Shown here: positions 9,253-23,219 of the stretch, in pieces
How positions within the stretch are numbered: the first letter of the stretch is position 1
Layout of the letters: each line of letters begins with the position of its first letter
Assembly (NCBI GenBank): GCA_937625935.1
Contig: OW569388.1
Location: forward strand, 124,001 to 188,000
Source of the DNA: Tetramitus jugosus
Taxonomy: Eukaryota; Protista; Heterolobosea
DNA: 64,000 nucleotides
Direction: 5' to 3'
Made by a program: the position numbers and the translations under genes
The notes under the pieces: generated by a model
The model's database searches: none
The model's input: the letters and a program-made list of their open reading frames with translations, nothing else
What the model was told of the DNA's origin: nothing

Positions 9253-12246
9253 ATGAAAATACTATCAATGTTTAGAACTGGTGTGAGCACATGGAGCAAA
9301 CCCAATTTAGTTTCAACTGAAGCTACTACAACTACAACTACTACTGAAACTACGACAACAAGTGAAACAGTTGTCGTGGTGGAAAATATTGTTGTTCCTA
9401 TTGAGAGTAGTGAAAAAGTGGTTGATACGAGCGACACAACGGACACTGTCCACATGAATCATACAAGTGACAACAACAACAACAACAATAATGATAACGA
9501 TAATAATAATAACGATATTCATGAACCAACAGCATCATCAGCATCTAATGATCAACACGTAGCAATTGAAGAAGAGCAACATCCAGTCAAAGTTACAGCA
9601 GTTGCAGTTGAAAAAGAAGCAGAACAACAAACAACAACAACAGCAACAGCAACAACTACAACAGACGACAAACAAGAAAATGTACCATTAGCATCAGTGA
9701 ATCAACAACAACAACAACAACAATCAACAGAGGAAGAACAAGCCTTGGTAGACAGTGTAACAACAACAACTACAATAGCAACTACAGAACTACTAGCATC
9801 AGAGGTAGTTCTTGCTGCGCCACAACAAAAAGTTCAATCTGTTGGTTCAACATCCGAAAATCAAGAGGACAAAAAAACGGATGCTGTGCTGCTTTCATCC
9901 TCAACCTCAGTAGTTGCTCCCGTTGCGATTCAATGTGTATGGAGAGAACTCTTTGATGCATCTACTAACCGTCCCTACTATTACAATGATCAAACATTGT
10001 TAAGCGTTTGGGATAAGCCAGCCGAATTGTGCGAGTATGAATCTCAATTAGCAAAGCAGCTTGAGCTCAATGTACAGACCAACAACAATAGCAACAATAG
10101 CAACTCCACTGATTCCAATCGTTCTTCTCGCAACATTGATCAAGCACGTCTCTCATTGACTAATAACAACAACAACAATAATAGTCGTAACAGTAGTAGC
10201 AACAATAGCAGTCCAAGTCAAAGAAACAGTGCTGTGATTCGCAACTCCAAGAAGCGTCTCTCTCAATATGATGAAATGCTTGCAATGGCACTTGAGAAGC
10301 GAAAGAGTACTCGTTTTGTGTCTGATGGTGTTCTGCATGAGGAACCATCGAGCTCTTCAATGAATTCTGATGGTGCAGCAGAATCCAATCAAGCCCTGAT
10401 TGCCTCTATGTTGATGGCTTCTTCACCTACGGTTGAAGCGTTGATACTGGAGGATGATAAGAACTCGAGAAGACAATCTCAGAGAAGAAGCATGGCCAGG
10501 ATGCATGTGAGATCATCGAGCACTGATCAAATTTTGAATGATTTGAGCAATAGCAATGCCAATAACAACAATTCAAGCAAATGTGATCACGTGGGAAAGA
10601 GCAGAGATGCTGGTCAAATGACTCTTCCATTGTTGAGCATTCCATCATTTGGAAATCTTGATATGGCAGCTTCCAGCAGTAATGCAAGTAGTTCATCTTC
10701 AGGTGCAAGTGGAGAGCTTAGTGGTTCTGCTACGACACGTGCCATGTCTTCCAAGGAACTGCGCAATCATAATTTACAACGAGTGAACAATGATAAGCGT
10801 AGAAGTACCATTTTGAACCATCCTGTCTACATTCCAAACTCTGTCAGACATTCTCCATCGACCAAGAAGAGACCAACCTCCACTGCCTTCTTGTTCAATC
10901 AAATTCCATTAAAGTGTACTGGAAAGAACACTTTGGTCACGTACGGACAAGCAAAGTTCCAACAGCATCGAAAGGGATTGTTTAGAACTGTTGTTCCCAC
11001 CAACAAGATGCTTCTCTTCACAAAAGATAAGCTCAAGGACACTTTGCATGAGATGTCACGTGAGGCACACACAACACTGTGCCTCACCTTCTTCGATCTG
11101 GTTCAGCTGTACATGTTGGACAGAAAGTACAAGGACTTGCAAGCAACCTCAAAGGAGTTCATGATGAAGCAGTGTCAATTCTCTGAGACTGACTCTGAAA
11201 AACTGACCAAGGACGTGTACGATGCAGATGTGAAGCTTGCAAAGGCCATTCTTACCATTTGTCTCAATGAGGTTGTGATACGAAACGAGTGCATGATTCT
11301 GTTGTGTAAGCAGTGCAATGGAAATCCAAATCCAACAAGAGCTGTTCGAGGTCTTCAATTGCTTGCTCTGTTCCTCACTGCGTTCCCACCAACGCTTGCC
11401 ATTCTGCAGGAAGCAGTGTGTCACTTCCTTCAAGTGTTGCCACTGGACCCTAGAGCAACAGATGAGATGAGAACCATGTGTATCGTGGCAGAGAAGAGAC
11501 TGCGAAGAAGTGTATTGACCGGTCCTCGGAAATCAATGCTCAGTGATACAGAGTTCCGCAATATGACACACCGAGAGAAGGCCACAATCGAACCTAGTGT
11601 GTTTGGTGTAACAATAGAAGAGTATGTCAATTGGCAAAATGAGCACATTTTGGATCAGGCGAATGAACACAACAATGATCCCGTGATCCTTGTCATCTTG
11701 TCCGAAGCCATCGAACGACTCGGTGGATTCGAAACAGAGGGCATTTTCCGTCTGCCAGGTCATACACAACAAGTTGAACAATTGAGAGATGAACTCGCTC
11801 AGCTGCAATTGGTCAATGGAAAGAAGCAAATGGTGATTGGCAGCTGGGTGAAGGATCCACACGTTTGTGCCTCCGTTTTCAAGCTTTGGCTGAGAGAGTT
11901 GGCTGATCCTATCATTCCTGATGCGTTTTATCAGAAAGCTGTGGACTCTTCTCAAAACTTCGATGCATGTCTCGATGTGGCTAAACAGCTACCTGATGAC
12001 AACCGTATCATTCTCAATTTTGTGGTCCACTTCCTGTCGAGACTGTCCGAGGAAGCAGTCATCAAACAAACGAAGATGACAATTGAAAATCTGGCTGTGG
12101 TATTTGCACCAAACATCCTGAGAAGCAAGTCAATAGATCCAATGACCATTATGAAGAACAGCAATAATGAGAAACAGTTTGTAAAGACACTTGTGGCTGC
12201 CAATGTGGAGGCTGCCAAGAGAGGAGAACTTCTCATGGAAACATAA
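9253..12246 (+). CDS. WW + MyTH4 + RhoGAP protein (ARHGAP39/Vilse-like) with long low-complexity N-terminus
   Basis: WW WRELFDASTNRPYYYN..SVWDKP; MyTH4 RNECMILLCKQCNGNP..GLQLLALFLTAFPP; RhoGAP EGIFRLPG, SVFKLWLRELADP, KMTIENLAVVFAPNIL. Confidence 0.88.
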   Translation: MKILSMFRTGVSTWSKPNLVSTEATTTTTTTETTTTSETVVVVENIVVPIESSEKVVDTSDTTDTVHMNHTSDNNNNNNNDNDNNNNDIHEPTASSASNDQHVAIEEEQHPVKVTAVAVEKEAEQQTTTTATATTTTDDKQENVPLASVNQQQQQQQSTEEEQALVDSVTTTTTIATTELLASEVVLAAPQQKVQSVGSTSENQEDKKTDAVLLSSSTSVVAPVAIQCVWRELFDASTNRPYYYNDQTLLSVWDKPAELCEYESQLAKQLELNVQTNNNSNNSNSTDSNRSSRNIDQARLSLTNNNNNNNSRNSSSNNSSPSQRNSAVIRNSKKRLSQYDEMLAMALEKRKSTRFVSDGVLHEEPSSSSMNSDGAAESNQALIASMLMASSPTVEALILEDDKNSRRQSQRRSMARMHVRSSSTDQILNDLSNSNANNNNSSKCDHVGKSRDAGQMTLPLLSIPSFGNLDMAASSSNASSSSSGASGELSGSATTRAMSSKELRNHNLQRVNNDKRRSTILNHPVYIPNSVRHSPSTKKRPTSTAFLFNQIPLKCTGKNTLVTYGQAKFQQHRKGLFRTVVPTNKMLLFTKDKLKDTLHEMSREAHTTLCLTFFDLVQLYMLDRKYKDLQATSKEFMMKQCQFSETDSEKLTKDVYDADVKLAKAILTICLNEVVIRNECMILLCKQCNGNPNPTRAVRGLQLLALFLTAFPPTLAILQEAVCHFLQVLPLDPRATDEMRTMCIVAEKRLRRSVLTGPRKSMLSDTEFRNMTHREKATIEPSVFGVTIEEYVNWQNEHILDQANEHNNDPVILVILSEAIERLGGFETEGIFRLPGHTQQVEQLRDELAQLQLVNGKKQMVIGSWVKDPHVCASVFKLWLRELADPIIPDAFYQKAVDSSQNFDACLDVAKQLPDDNRIILNFVVHFLSRLSEEAVIKQTKMTIENLAVVFAPNILRSKSIDPMTIMKNSNNEKQFVKTLVAANVEAAKRGELLMET

Positions 12247-18871: not shown

Positions 18872-19096
18872 TTGTTCAAGTCGTTGTTTTGATTTTGGTT
18901 CGTTTGCACAGTGCAATCCAGTGGCATATGTACTCAAAGCACAGACTATGAGACTAGAGTAAATTGTTCTCTTCGCTATTTTTGTAAGTTATCCGCCTTC
19001 CAAACACGAAAATCATCCATAAACAACGATACAAATGAAGATGATGCAAGACTCATAATAACAGCAACAACAACAAAACAACACACAAACGAAGCA

Positions 19097-20029
19097 ATGA
19101 CAGCATCAAACAGCACTACGACATTTGCACACACTTCCAACTTGAATGGTGATCATAGGAGCAAGGGTGTGGGAGGTCGTGTCTCCTCTACATCACAGAA
19201 GATTGTGTGTCGTACTACAACGAAGATTCTTGAAGAGAAGCTATCAATTGCAAATAAGAAGATTCAGTTATTGAACCAAAGTGTCACCAAACTCCAACTG
19301 GAACTAGTTCACTACAAACAATATTTCGCTTCCATGTACCTGAACAATTCTATGAACCATAATACAGCATCAAGTGCAGTTCCAATTTCTATTGTTGCAC
19401 CTGTTAATATGGCATCTGTTGAGCAGAAGATTGATAATTACATTGAGCAATCTGATGATTCTGATCCAAGCATTGCATATTTTGAAGTGTCATGTGCTTT
19501 GAAAGTATTGAAGAGCAGAGTGAAGCAAGCACGTACCCAGTCTATTAGTTTTCAACCAGAGAACACTGCATGTAATATTACTCGTGGTGAGTTTGAGAAA
19601 TTGTATGATTGTCACAGAATCCAAGAATTTCTAGGTTCAGCAACCAAGATCCTTAATAATAGATTGCAACCTGGCTTTGCGAAGAATGGAACCAATCTAC
19701 ATCTAGGTCAATGTCCATTTTATCTGTTCAATTATTTTATGTCTCTACAGAGCAATTGTAAGCATACAACCAAAGTTTTCCACCCAATCAGAGATGGAGT
19801 GAGAGTGAATGTCACAAAGCATTATTATAGATTCAATAATACTCTTCCTGATTTTGGATCCAGATGGCACATTCGTGATCATGGAAATGTTGTTGACTGG
19901 AGTGCAGAAATGAGATCCATGTACCAATCCATTGTATTAATTATTAATGAAGAAGATGATAGAGTTACATGCAAGTACTCTCAAGTGTCACAATTCAAAT
20001 TTTGTGATCGTTGGATAGATACTGCATAA
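19097..20029 (+). CDS. Unknown 310-aa protein convergent with the RAG1-like transposase
   Basis: Long intronless ORF, N-terminal coiled coil (LEEKLSIANKKIQLLNQSVTKLQLEL), globular C-terminus; stop is 54 bp from the transposase stop. Confidence 0.7.
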   Translation: MTASNSTTTFAHTSNLNGDHRSKGVGGRVSSTSQKIVCRTTTKILEEKLSIANKKIQLLNQSVTKLQLELVHYKQYFASMYLNNSMNHNTASSAVPISIVAPVNMASVEQKIDNYIEQSDDSDPSIAYFEVSCALKVLKSRVKQARTQSISFQPENTACNITRGEFEKLYDCHRIQEFLGSATKILNNRLQPGFAKNGTNLHLGQCPFYLFNYFMSLQSNCKHTTKVFHPIRDGVRVNVTKHYYRFNNTLPDFGSRWHIRDHGNVVDWSAEMRSMYQSIVLIINEEDDRVTCKYSQVSQFKFCDRWIDTA

Positions 20030-20083
20030 TATGGACTAATTGTAAACAATTCATTTTTCAACTTCTGCAATGTAATTATATAC

Positions 20084-22849
20084 TCATACACTTCGAGCAT
20101 TATTGATGTTGCCAATAAGCGTCTGTAGGAAAGAATCATTAGCTCCACTATACGCACGTGTGTTTCTCATCAAATCTGGATCAATTCTCTGCCTCTTATT
20201 AGAGTTATTGTCAGTTGTCACATACAATGGATACTGTGGCTGGAACTGTTGTTGCTCTTGCACAACTGGTGCAAGTTGTGGCTGGAACTGCTGTGTTGAG
20301 TACTGTTGAGATCCGTATTGTATCAATGGATACTGCTGCTGGAATTGTGGTGGCATCTGTGGAACAAATGGATTATTCATTTCTGGAATAGGGCCATTCT
20401 GTTGAGACGAATCAATGCTGGTACTGTTTCCAATTGGTACATATGCCTTCTCTGTTGATTGTGGTAGTTCAGATACATATTGTTGCATATATCCCTCTAT
20501 ATCATCACCCATCTGGAGCAAATCCAGTAGTACAATCAATTTCCAGTTCTCCAATTTGTTCAATAGGAGCTTTCGTGGATCATTCTTCTTCTTTTTGCTG
20601 TTAGTTTCATCTGTTTCATCAACGAATTCGTCATCGCTGTTACCATTATCATCTATAGGCTCCATATATTCAGAGTGTTTGCCCAGCCACTTTATATGTT
20701 CATGCTGTGCTGGTAGATATATCTTTCTGAGGCCTTGATAGAATGTTTGCTCAAACTGAGTCTTTCTAGCAACGCCACTCTTTGCAGCTTTACCACCTGC
20801 ACTTGTAGCTCGTGTCTTGGCTTTCATGTGCATAGAGTGGACATTCTCTGTTCCTTCATTCGAATATCTGCACAAAGATCCATGCTGCACCAGCAATTCC
20901 GGCAAATGTTTGATCATAATATGAAAGTAATAGGCAAATTTGCTCGCTGGATATCTGAATCTGAGGAGACTTCCGAGTGTTTTGAGCAGTTGCTGCAGAA
21001 GCTCCATGTCTAACTCTTCAATCTCTTTGCTAGATGCCTCTACATATCTGTACATAACATATCGATGAATTTTCCAGATTGTAAGCTCCGCTGGATCTGC
21101 AATACCATCCAGCACACTCTCAAAGTTATGAAGAATCTCATTCACTTGACTGCCATTCAGATATGGTAACTTGATGTTGCTCTGATCGAAGTCATCATCA
21201 TCTGGATCATTCTCTCGAGCACGAAAATCAAACTGCGAACATCCATTTAACTTTCTGATGTTCTCTTTCAGCTGCTCATGCAATGGTTGCTCCTCACGAG
21301 ATCTCAACAGAATTTGTGACAGAAGATTGCATACAGTTCTCATCTTCAAATGTAGAATACAGATCATAATAACGACATCCATTTTGTATTTCATATTCAA
21401 CATTCTAGCTGCGTGATCCTTTTGAAATAAATGTCTTTCAGCTTTCTTGCACATGCAAAATGGACAGAACAGACCATTCTTGAACACATCAGATATAAGA
21501 GATAGAGCCTTCAGATCATTAACTAAAAATAACTTTAACTTGAATTCAACTTGATCTTGAGTGAATCCATTTTCTATCCACTTCTGAATTTGTTCGAATA
21601 TAGGCTTGAACCTGGTGTCCACATCCTTCTCAGTTTCTGATCCAACATACGAGGCGCAGCAAATACACGAGTCTCTTGATTGAGTTGCAAAAGTAGAGAG
21701 GTTCAATGGCGTGAAAGTCATTGTCGTATATGCGTTTGCTCCACCATCAAATGACAGCTTTCCTTCAATAGACACTTCTCTTGGACCATCTGGAGTATAC
21801 ATAGAATCTCTGTGACAACAACAAATAGCAGAATGAATGTGATGTCTCTGGTGCTTGTTTGAACTGGTACAACAATTATCAGAATGAGTGTGACGCACCT
21901 GCTGCAGTTCTTTCAATGCTCTTTTATGAATTTTGTGCATATCAGCTATTGCTTTGTCTAGTTCAATCTGTAGTCCATCCATAATTTTTGTGACACTATA
22001 CTTTTCCTCTATTTCATTATTCACATTAATTCTCGTTCGCTTGAGCGTTGACTCATGAGGTATATCATTCAAATTAGTATAACCTCGAACACCCTGCAGT
22101 AAACCATCGCTGATCATATAATGGTCTTTCATATACAAAATTGAAAACTTATCTGTTCTTAGTGGATTTGCTTCTTTCAAAATCTGGTTGATAGTTGAAT
22201 ACCTATTGGATCGTTTGGACACCTTTCCAGTTTGATCTCTGATGAAACTATCGATGATCTTATAGAAAATTTCTGGATGATATTGAAAATATAGTTCAAG
22301 AATGGCTTCCAATTATTGGCCATTCGACTCTAAAAGTTCAACGACACCGCACATCAAACGAGTAACTGTTTGTTTTTTATGACCTGCATCATCCATTTCT
22401 TTAACTAATTTGTAAGGTCTTCTGCCGCTCGTTGGTGATACAGTATGATTGTTACATTTGGCACAGTTTAAATTGAATAACTTCTTCATGTCTACATGAC
22501 CAAGTGGAATAGCAGATCCAGTTGCTTCTGAATTGTTTGAATTCACTAAATTATCTTCATTTAACTTTTCGGTCATAATTGAAACAAGATAGCTTATATA
22601 TGAATCACGAACTGAGCACAATTCACTCTGCAAGAATTGATGTAACCATTTTTTATCCACGTATTTATGATTGCCAATCATCATACCAACTGGTTTATAT
22701 GCTGCACTTTGTTGTGGTTTGAAATTCTTCGGCTTCTTGTCACTTCTAGTGCAGTAGTTCTTAATGAGACTTGTCAGATTGAAGTAATGAATGTCATTCA
22801 CTCTTGTGAATACCAATATACTTGGATCAAAATTGACTTGTGCATTCAT
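20084..22849 (-). CDS. RAG1-core-like DDE transposase, interrupted by one in-frame TAA (22313-22315)
   Basis: KLSFDG, LVNDLK, FCPFC, ILHLKMR, LNGSQV, YYFHIMIKHLPELLVQHGSLCRYSNEGTENVH, in the order of the RAG1 core motifs; ORFs 22313..22849 and 20084..22312 share one frame. Confidence 0.8.
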
Positions 22850-23219
22850 TTGTTCGTGTGTTGCTTGTTATTCGTGTTGTTGAAGTTCCACTTTTTTGTT
22901 GACACCAGTTCTTCTATCAATCATAAACAATCGCACTCAAACAATGACTAGTCATCAAATTCAAATCATAATAACCAAAGATTCGTATTGGAAGGCTTTA
23001 TTTGGACATATTTTAGCCATTACATCGTTGCATGACCAAAAACGAATTGTTGATGATATCACAGCTTAGAATGGGGGGAAGTGGAACATACCCCACAAAC
23101 CAAGCATTGAACTGTATTGAAAATAATTGTCCGATGAAATGACACCGCGTATCTTCGAAGCGCGGGATTTCAGGAAGACCTTCTACGGTTATTTTCAAGG
23201 TAAAAATCTGTTGGCGAAA

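Follow-up and report, generated by a model that had tools for sequence, protein, structure and literature searches.

The window analysed here, a stretch of 64,000 nucleotides of Tetramitus jugosus DNA, contains a 4206-bp element (positions 18914 to 23119) that is probably a DNA transposon of the cut-and-paste type, with two genes and recent activity, belonging to a distinct lineage of the CMCT / RAG1-Transib group that has spread in heterolobosean amoebae. The element works like RAG1/Transib, yet it shows neither the target-site duplication (TSD), nor the type of terminal inverted repeat (TIR), nor the RAG2 partner of a Transib or RAGL element, and it also lacks the TSD of the CMCT clade. Transib-like proteins have been described in fungi, plants and bacteria. 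Moreover, a complete RAGL is known in Aureococcus, and unicellular RAG1L and Transib have already been described (PMC9435367). RAG1-like transposases of protists are therefore already known; the novelty here lies in the partner gene and in the absence of a target duplication.

Ends, copies and insertion site

The published long-read assembly of T. jugosus represents one haplotype (26.3 Mb in 55 scaffolds plus the mitochondrion, the longest of 0.7 Mb; PMC11106597). A search for further copies in the genome, proposed by the original prediction, gave five copies of 4206 bp on five contigs, and a 398-bp piece of one element end adjoins an N stretch on contig C20. Since the five copies are identical base for base and their flanks are unrelated, they indicate that the element moved recently. 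The termini are short imperfect inverted repeats of the form CAAT...ATTG. The repeat on the ORF2 side (18914 to 18922, plus strand) is CAATCCAGT, with eight of nine matches to the other end, and that on the transposase side (23111 to 23119, minus strand) is CAATACAGT, the same nine bases with which the related metagenome element L026 opens.

The insertion (18913 to 23120) lies between divergent SAC9-like and dynactin-p27-like genes, and in the empty allele position 18913 is followed immediately by 23120. It is polymorphic, as the site is empty in the metagenome runs X5 and X6 (groundwater, soil) and a diverged element-free haplotype is present in run X3, from the same organism. For the copy on contig C3, no paralogous empty site was found. 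The host flank just outside the element reads CACAGTG (18907 to 18913, plus strand), a look-alike of the RSS heptamer. This motif was rejected as an RSS-like element end, being absent beside the other four copies and present in the empty alleles of X5 and X6.

The element appears to be transcribed. Run X3 is probably RNA, because two GT-AG introns of a neighbouring gene are skipped in it, and there the element forms one contig of 4206 bases, unspliced and unchanged, as far as contigs that reveal neither the strand nor rare variants can show. The element sits inside the short divergent promoter of the SAC9-like and dynactin-p27-like genes (18890 to 23160), and in X3 the dynactin-like gene appeared only together with the element-free haplotype, a hint of allele silencing from contigs that drop variants. 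Runs X5 and X6 carry internally deleted, diverged versions of one end (22554 to 23119) and also other flanks at the element termini, so that the family occupies other sites in wild strains. Elsewhere, two related elements, L028 and L029, lie tail to tail with 4 bases between them (G000 C4:468467-476541), and one of them opens with the Transib consensus heptamer CACAATG.

A transposase gene divided by a stop codon

The original prediction had placed a transposase gene at 20084 to 22312. An open reading frame of 742 amino acids does occupy this interval on the minus strand and encodes the core, with an RNase H DDE fold and a C2H2 zinc site of RAG1/Transib type and a low-complexity Gln/Pro-rich tail; however, it is only the portion that follows an in-frame TAA (22313 to 22315, codon 179), and the gene itself starts at 22849. 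The RAG1-core motifs claimed from the sequence were all located on the minus strand in the expected order: KLSFDG (21743-21760), LVNDLK (21509-21526), CPFC (21455-21466), CILH (21350-21361), YLNG (21152-21163), YYFHIMIKH (20906-20932) and NEGTENVH (20837-20860). In the alignment, the D, D, C, C, H, H, H and E columns are kept in 36 to 41 of the 41 homologues. A His/Cys-rich insert ahead of the first catalytic Asp (21812 to 21890) is missing in close homologues and has low confidence in the structural model.

A Pfam search of the window proteins found nothing for the transposase or for ORF2, and a single-sequence search of the PDB reached RAG1 weakly (E 0.006). In the searches the N-terminal and core pieces of the transposase served as separate queries, and a read-through sequence with X at the stop entered local alignments only. 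A search of 1.8 billion representative sequences yielded 129 relatives, and a profile of 57 homologues matched RAG1 at E 8.5e-7 and BbRAG1L at 8e-5. The AlphaFold model of the transposase (542 amino acids, pLDDT 87) gave Foldseek E-values below 1e-6 with RAG1 (2e-11), BbRAG1L and HzTransib only. In a wide structural search RAG1 scored highest (Z 21.4, 426 aligned, rmsd 3.6), followed by BbRAG1L (19.7), HzTransib (15.9), the P element (10.4) and Hermes of the hAT superfamily (7.3). Hence the comparison with the RAG1 core, BbRAG1L and HzTransib that had been suggested at the outset recovered the DDE core with its C2H2 zinc site, P and hAT scoring far lower, and the predicted structure confirms a RAG1/Transib-type fold and active site, at an identity to RAG1 of 11-13%.

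The homologues that bear an organism name belong to Naegleria gruberi, N. lovaniensis, Willaertia, Pharyngomonas and Planoprotostelium. No relatives turned up in viral, JGI metagenome, prokaryotic and plasmid collections, the first three having been searched by pattern, which is a weak method. The tree took in family members only, and the element is set apart from Transib and RAGL by its missing TSD, its TIR and its partner gene. Among the family members, P0011, P0048 and P0117 are fused to Zn2Cys6, Ulp1 protease or SAP domains. Two more distantly related RAG1-fold transposases (G000 C37:146739-148049 and C9:301628-302827) have open frames of 1123 and 1015 amino acids. At the start of G000 C46, positions 1 to 800 of locus L031 are telomeric repeat CCCAAA/TTTGGG, and a frameshifted transposase relic lies about 1 kb inward.

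The N-terminal part of the gene (22316 to 22849, minus strand, 178 amino acids) contains a region resembling KilA-N, a CxxC motif and a GRRP segment, and is collinear with single-ORF homologues. The KilA-N resemblance is no more than that, and an identity with this domain found no support in Pfam or the PDB. The GRRP segment, judged from the profile alignment to RAG1, would sit where RAG1 has its nonamer-binding domain, and the TAA divides the segment aligned with that domain from the transposase core. In a six-way alignment, the 178 residues and the core form a single protein in five relatives, which are collinear with the element transposase across the TAA. The stop is present in all five copies, and homologues carry a sense codon at this place. 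Removal by an intron was rejected, since the homologues are collinear across the stop and no splice joint is listed in the contigs of the sequencing runs. An alternative genetic code or editing was likewise rejected, since the neighbouring genes use TAA for termination and no other letter is listed at the codon, in contigs that drop rare forms.

The motifs had been described as intact, which is correct for the catalytic and zinc-binding ones but not for the gene as a whole, because in every copy the TAA severs the N-terminal DNA-binding part from the core. As the next Met is 61 codons downstream, the five copies are probably incapable of producing the full-length enzyme without read-through. 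This in-frame stop leads to the proposal that the copies were moved in trans by an enzyme from an intact sister outside the haploid assembly, to which the authors' own estimate gives a little less than an even chance. Short contigs 86-93% identical to the element, absent from the assembly, occur in runs X3 and X4 of T. jugosus, and their sequences point to a sister family as a possible source of the enzyme. The genome also has four less closely related families, whose transposase frames are open and whose ends are different. Among the alternatives to a sister's enzyme, read-through of the stop is the least unlikely, a split or re-initiated protein is improbable, and use of another family's enzyme is more doubtful still.

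The partner gene

ORF2 (19097 to 20029, plus strand; 310 amino acids from the first ATG) and the transposase gene converge tail to tail, and 55 bases separate the end of ORF2 from the stop of the transposase. The conserved part of ORF2 is a domain of about 150 residues at the end of the protein. The same convergent arrangement beside a transposase was found in six other elements or relics of the genome, in N. gruberi, in N. lovaniensis and in metagenome contigs. A more distant version stands in tandem upstream of the transposase in Willaertia, in a second N. lovaniensis family, in element L052 and in Planoprotostelium; these matches are weak (E 2e-4 to 4e-3, with one piece at 3e-7; hhalign probability 62-64%).

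The model of ORF2 (pLDDT 89) consists of a long helix and an antiparallel sheet. Searches of the PDB, viral and Atlas libraries gave no match for this fold (best Z 5.2, best TM 0.43), which by itself is no proof of a new fold. An identity with RAG2 or another Kelch protein was rejected, as the model has no propeller match in the fold searches, and Pfam domains of CACTA helper proteins were not found in ORF2. Two side observations concern the gene content of relatives. Element L045 (4002 to 5315, G000 C24) is 1.3 kb long, with TIRs matching at 12 of 12 positions, an open ORF2 and no transposase, and at its ends it is very similar to L052, an element of the tandem layout. The latter, 6.5 kb long, holds inside its TIRs a third gene (9909 to 10925) with a faint 2OG-Fe(II) oxygenase match (E 0.03), which recalls the TET/JBP cargo of fungal CMCT elements.

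Judged by co-occurrence alone, the likeliest role of ORF2 is that of an accessory transpososome subunit, comparable to RAG2L in this role and unrelated to it. The competing reading, in which ORF2 is a passenger or an effector aimed at the host (such as an anti-silencing factor or a nuclease) outside the transposition machinery, is the weaker of the two, although it retains an appreciable chance. It would fit the survival of TIRs and an open ORF2 in L045, and a weak EndoU lead (score 0.79) would suit a nuclease. However, ORF2 has been retained with the transposase in very divergent families and in two layouts, and the EndoU identity was rejected, as no EndoU appeared in four fold searches and the alignment contains no conserved His/Lys set.

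Integration and relation to known transposons

RAG, ProtoRAG and Transib generate duplications of 5 bp (PMC1131882, PMC10629977), and those of the wider CMCT clade measure 2-5 bp (PMC12730594). No TSD of 2-10 bp was found at any of 18 two-ended elements, namely the five copies and 13 further loci, which comprise, in the genome, four more elements of autonomous type and a derivative with ORF2 alone and, elsewhere, elements of N. gruberi, N. lovaniensis, Planoprotostelium (with tentative ends) and metagenomes. Each of the further elements lies between CA...TG inverted repeats that agree at 10-12 of 12 positions; the ends of single-copy relatives are the best CA...TG inverted pair and were not defined from multiple copies. 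The window site, the one site compared with true empty alleles, has no bases gained or lost relative to X5 and X6, and the other haplotype in X3 reads TG followed by AAAATAATTG once. In the N. lovaniensis element L041, runs of 376 and 622 stop-free codons join in frame only by a 0-bp join, giving a frame of 998 codons, and each of the other five frames has many stops; at L020 a 0-bp join is supported more weakly. At the four flank positions closest to the element A/T predominates, and the flanks vary with no clear target motif. A single residue as the cause of the missing TSD was rejected: the YLNG tyrosine is taken here to match RAG1 R848, and at this position TSD-less elements have Y, M, K, R, P or F.

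By analogy with RAG and Transib biochemistry, a transposase dimer would bind the CA...TG ends and excise the element by nick and hairpin, a cleavage suggested by the fold, leaving blunt ends with 3'-OH. Both ends would be joined to phosphodiester bonds directly opposite each other (a stagger of 0, perhaps sometimes 1) and not 5 bp apart, so that no gap would be filled. ORF2 would act in this process as the accessory subunit.

A variable stagger of 0-1 bp, with about half of the insertions producing a 1-bp duplication, is unlikely. The same single base stands on both sides at 9 of the 18 junctions against 4.9 expected (p ~0.03), and 1-bp duplications may thus arise part of the time, as far as the junction sequences can tell. 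However, L041 is one of these nine (G|G), and its frame is restored only when no base is removed, so this match is not a duplication; furthermore, the sample is small and a target preference could yield the same excess. A lower probability, about half as great, is given to a transposase that only excises, with host end joining then inserting the blunt-ended element at pre-existing double-strand breaks and hence no TSD. RAG signal ends can be captured at breaks and RAG-type enzymes leave blunt ends, and both a TSD and a clear target motif are missing; on the other side, the tested junctions are precise at both ends, with full element ends and all host bases kept, and repeated gains in copy number are better explained by enzymatic integration.

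It is very unlikely that the element is an ordinary protist member of Transib or RAGL whose TSDs have decayed or been lost by assembly or by recombination between copies. RAG1 is its best structural match, some relatives start with CAC and one with the Transib heptamer, and the gene layout is convergent, as in ProtoRAG. Nevertheless, copies that are 100% identical make decay of the TSD impossible, and the empty allele shows that the flanks are contiguous, which largely refutes this explanation; the TSD is likewise missing in the independently assembled N. gruberi, N. lovaniensis and metagenome contigs, and the partner is not a Kelch protein. Finally, a domesticated recombinase carrying out programmed rearrangement for the amoeba can hardly be credited. 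The RAG1-like fold and the apparent transcription would agree with it, but the element is multicopy, bounded by TIRs, polymorphic in its insertion, interrupted by a premature stop and accompanied by many decayed relatives, and at the window locus the empty alleles refute it.

The preferred reading, a two-gene transposon of a distinct lineage, can be set against the known systems. With RAGL (ProtoRAG/BbRAGL; AanRAGL of Aureococcus, PMC9435367) the element shares the fold (Z 19.7-21.4), the DDE and C2H2 residues and the possession of two genes, and the ORF2 layouts are both those of RAG2L, convergent as in ProtoRAG and tandem upstream as in AanRAGL; it differs in having a partner that is not a RAG2-like Kelch/PHD propeller protein, no 5-bp TSD and no RSS-like heptamer/nonamer TIR. 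Transib (HzTransib; PMC1131882) resembles it in fold (Z 15.9), motif order, size (3.5-4.2 kb) and CA start (CAC in some relatives). However, Transib makes 5-bp TSDs in GC-rich targets and has a TIR of CAC heptamer and A-rich nonamer, whereas the element makes no such duplication, starts with CAAT, lacks any stretch of four A within 80 bases of either terminus and carries a conserved second gene. The CMCT clade (EnSpm/CACTA, Mirage, Chapaev, Plavaka, ESTA, Lanisha; PMC12730594) is matched in the DDE with C(2)C and H(3-4)H motifs and in the 5'-CA..TG-3' termini, a form that was preset in the search for single-copy relatives, but not in its 2-5 bp TSD, which neither the 18 elements nor the empty alleles reveal. 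Membership in a RAG1/Transib/Chapaev group, as first proposed, thus holds for the RAG1/Transib-type fold and not for the defining features of Transib and RAGL, as the 5-bp TSD, RAG2L and the CAC heptamer are missing. Chapaev duplicates 4 bp and Chapaev3 3 bp, and the element does neither. Spy (PHIS group; PMC4122938) is a known precedent of a DDE element with TIRs and no TSD, but of an unrelated lineage, its transposase being IS5/Harbinger-like (PHIS-type) and its target AAATTT; the present element has a RAG1-like fold and no such target.

A full-text literature search, with Repbase and most subscription journals outside its scope, gave no account of the family from Heterolobosea. It seems to be unrecognised in heterolobosean genomes, since its genes are annotated there as hypothetical proteins and have no Pfam match. 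The element may have the rank of a superfamily. The 5-bp duplication is regarded as a fixed trait of RAG, ProtoRAG and Transib, linked to sharply bent target DNA, and the structural basis of the target stagger can be tested directly in a naturally occurring relative that shares this core without a duplication; a duplication-free integrase could also serve genome engineering. The partner gene provides a test of whether RAG1-like enzymes gained helper subunits more than once. It is tentatively suggested, at somewhat less than even probability, that the family is an undescribed superfamily-level branch with a RAG1/Transib fold in amoebae, combining zero-stagger integration with an obligatory second subunit of new fold. 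If this is true, a RAG2-like helper role would have been acquired independently, and TSD-free DDE integration would have had a second origin, after that of Spy.
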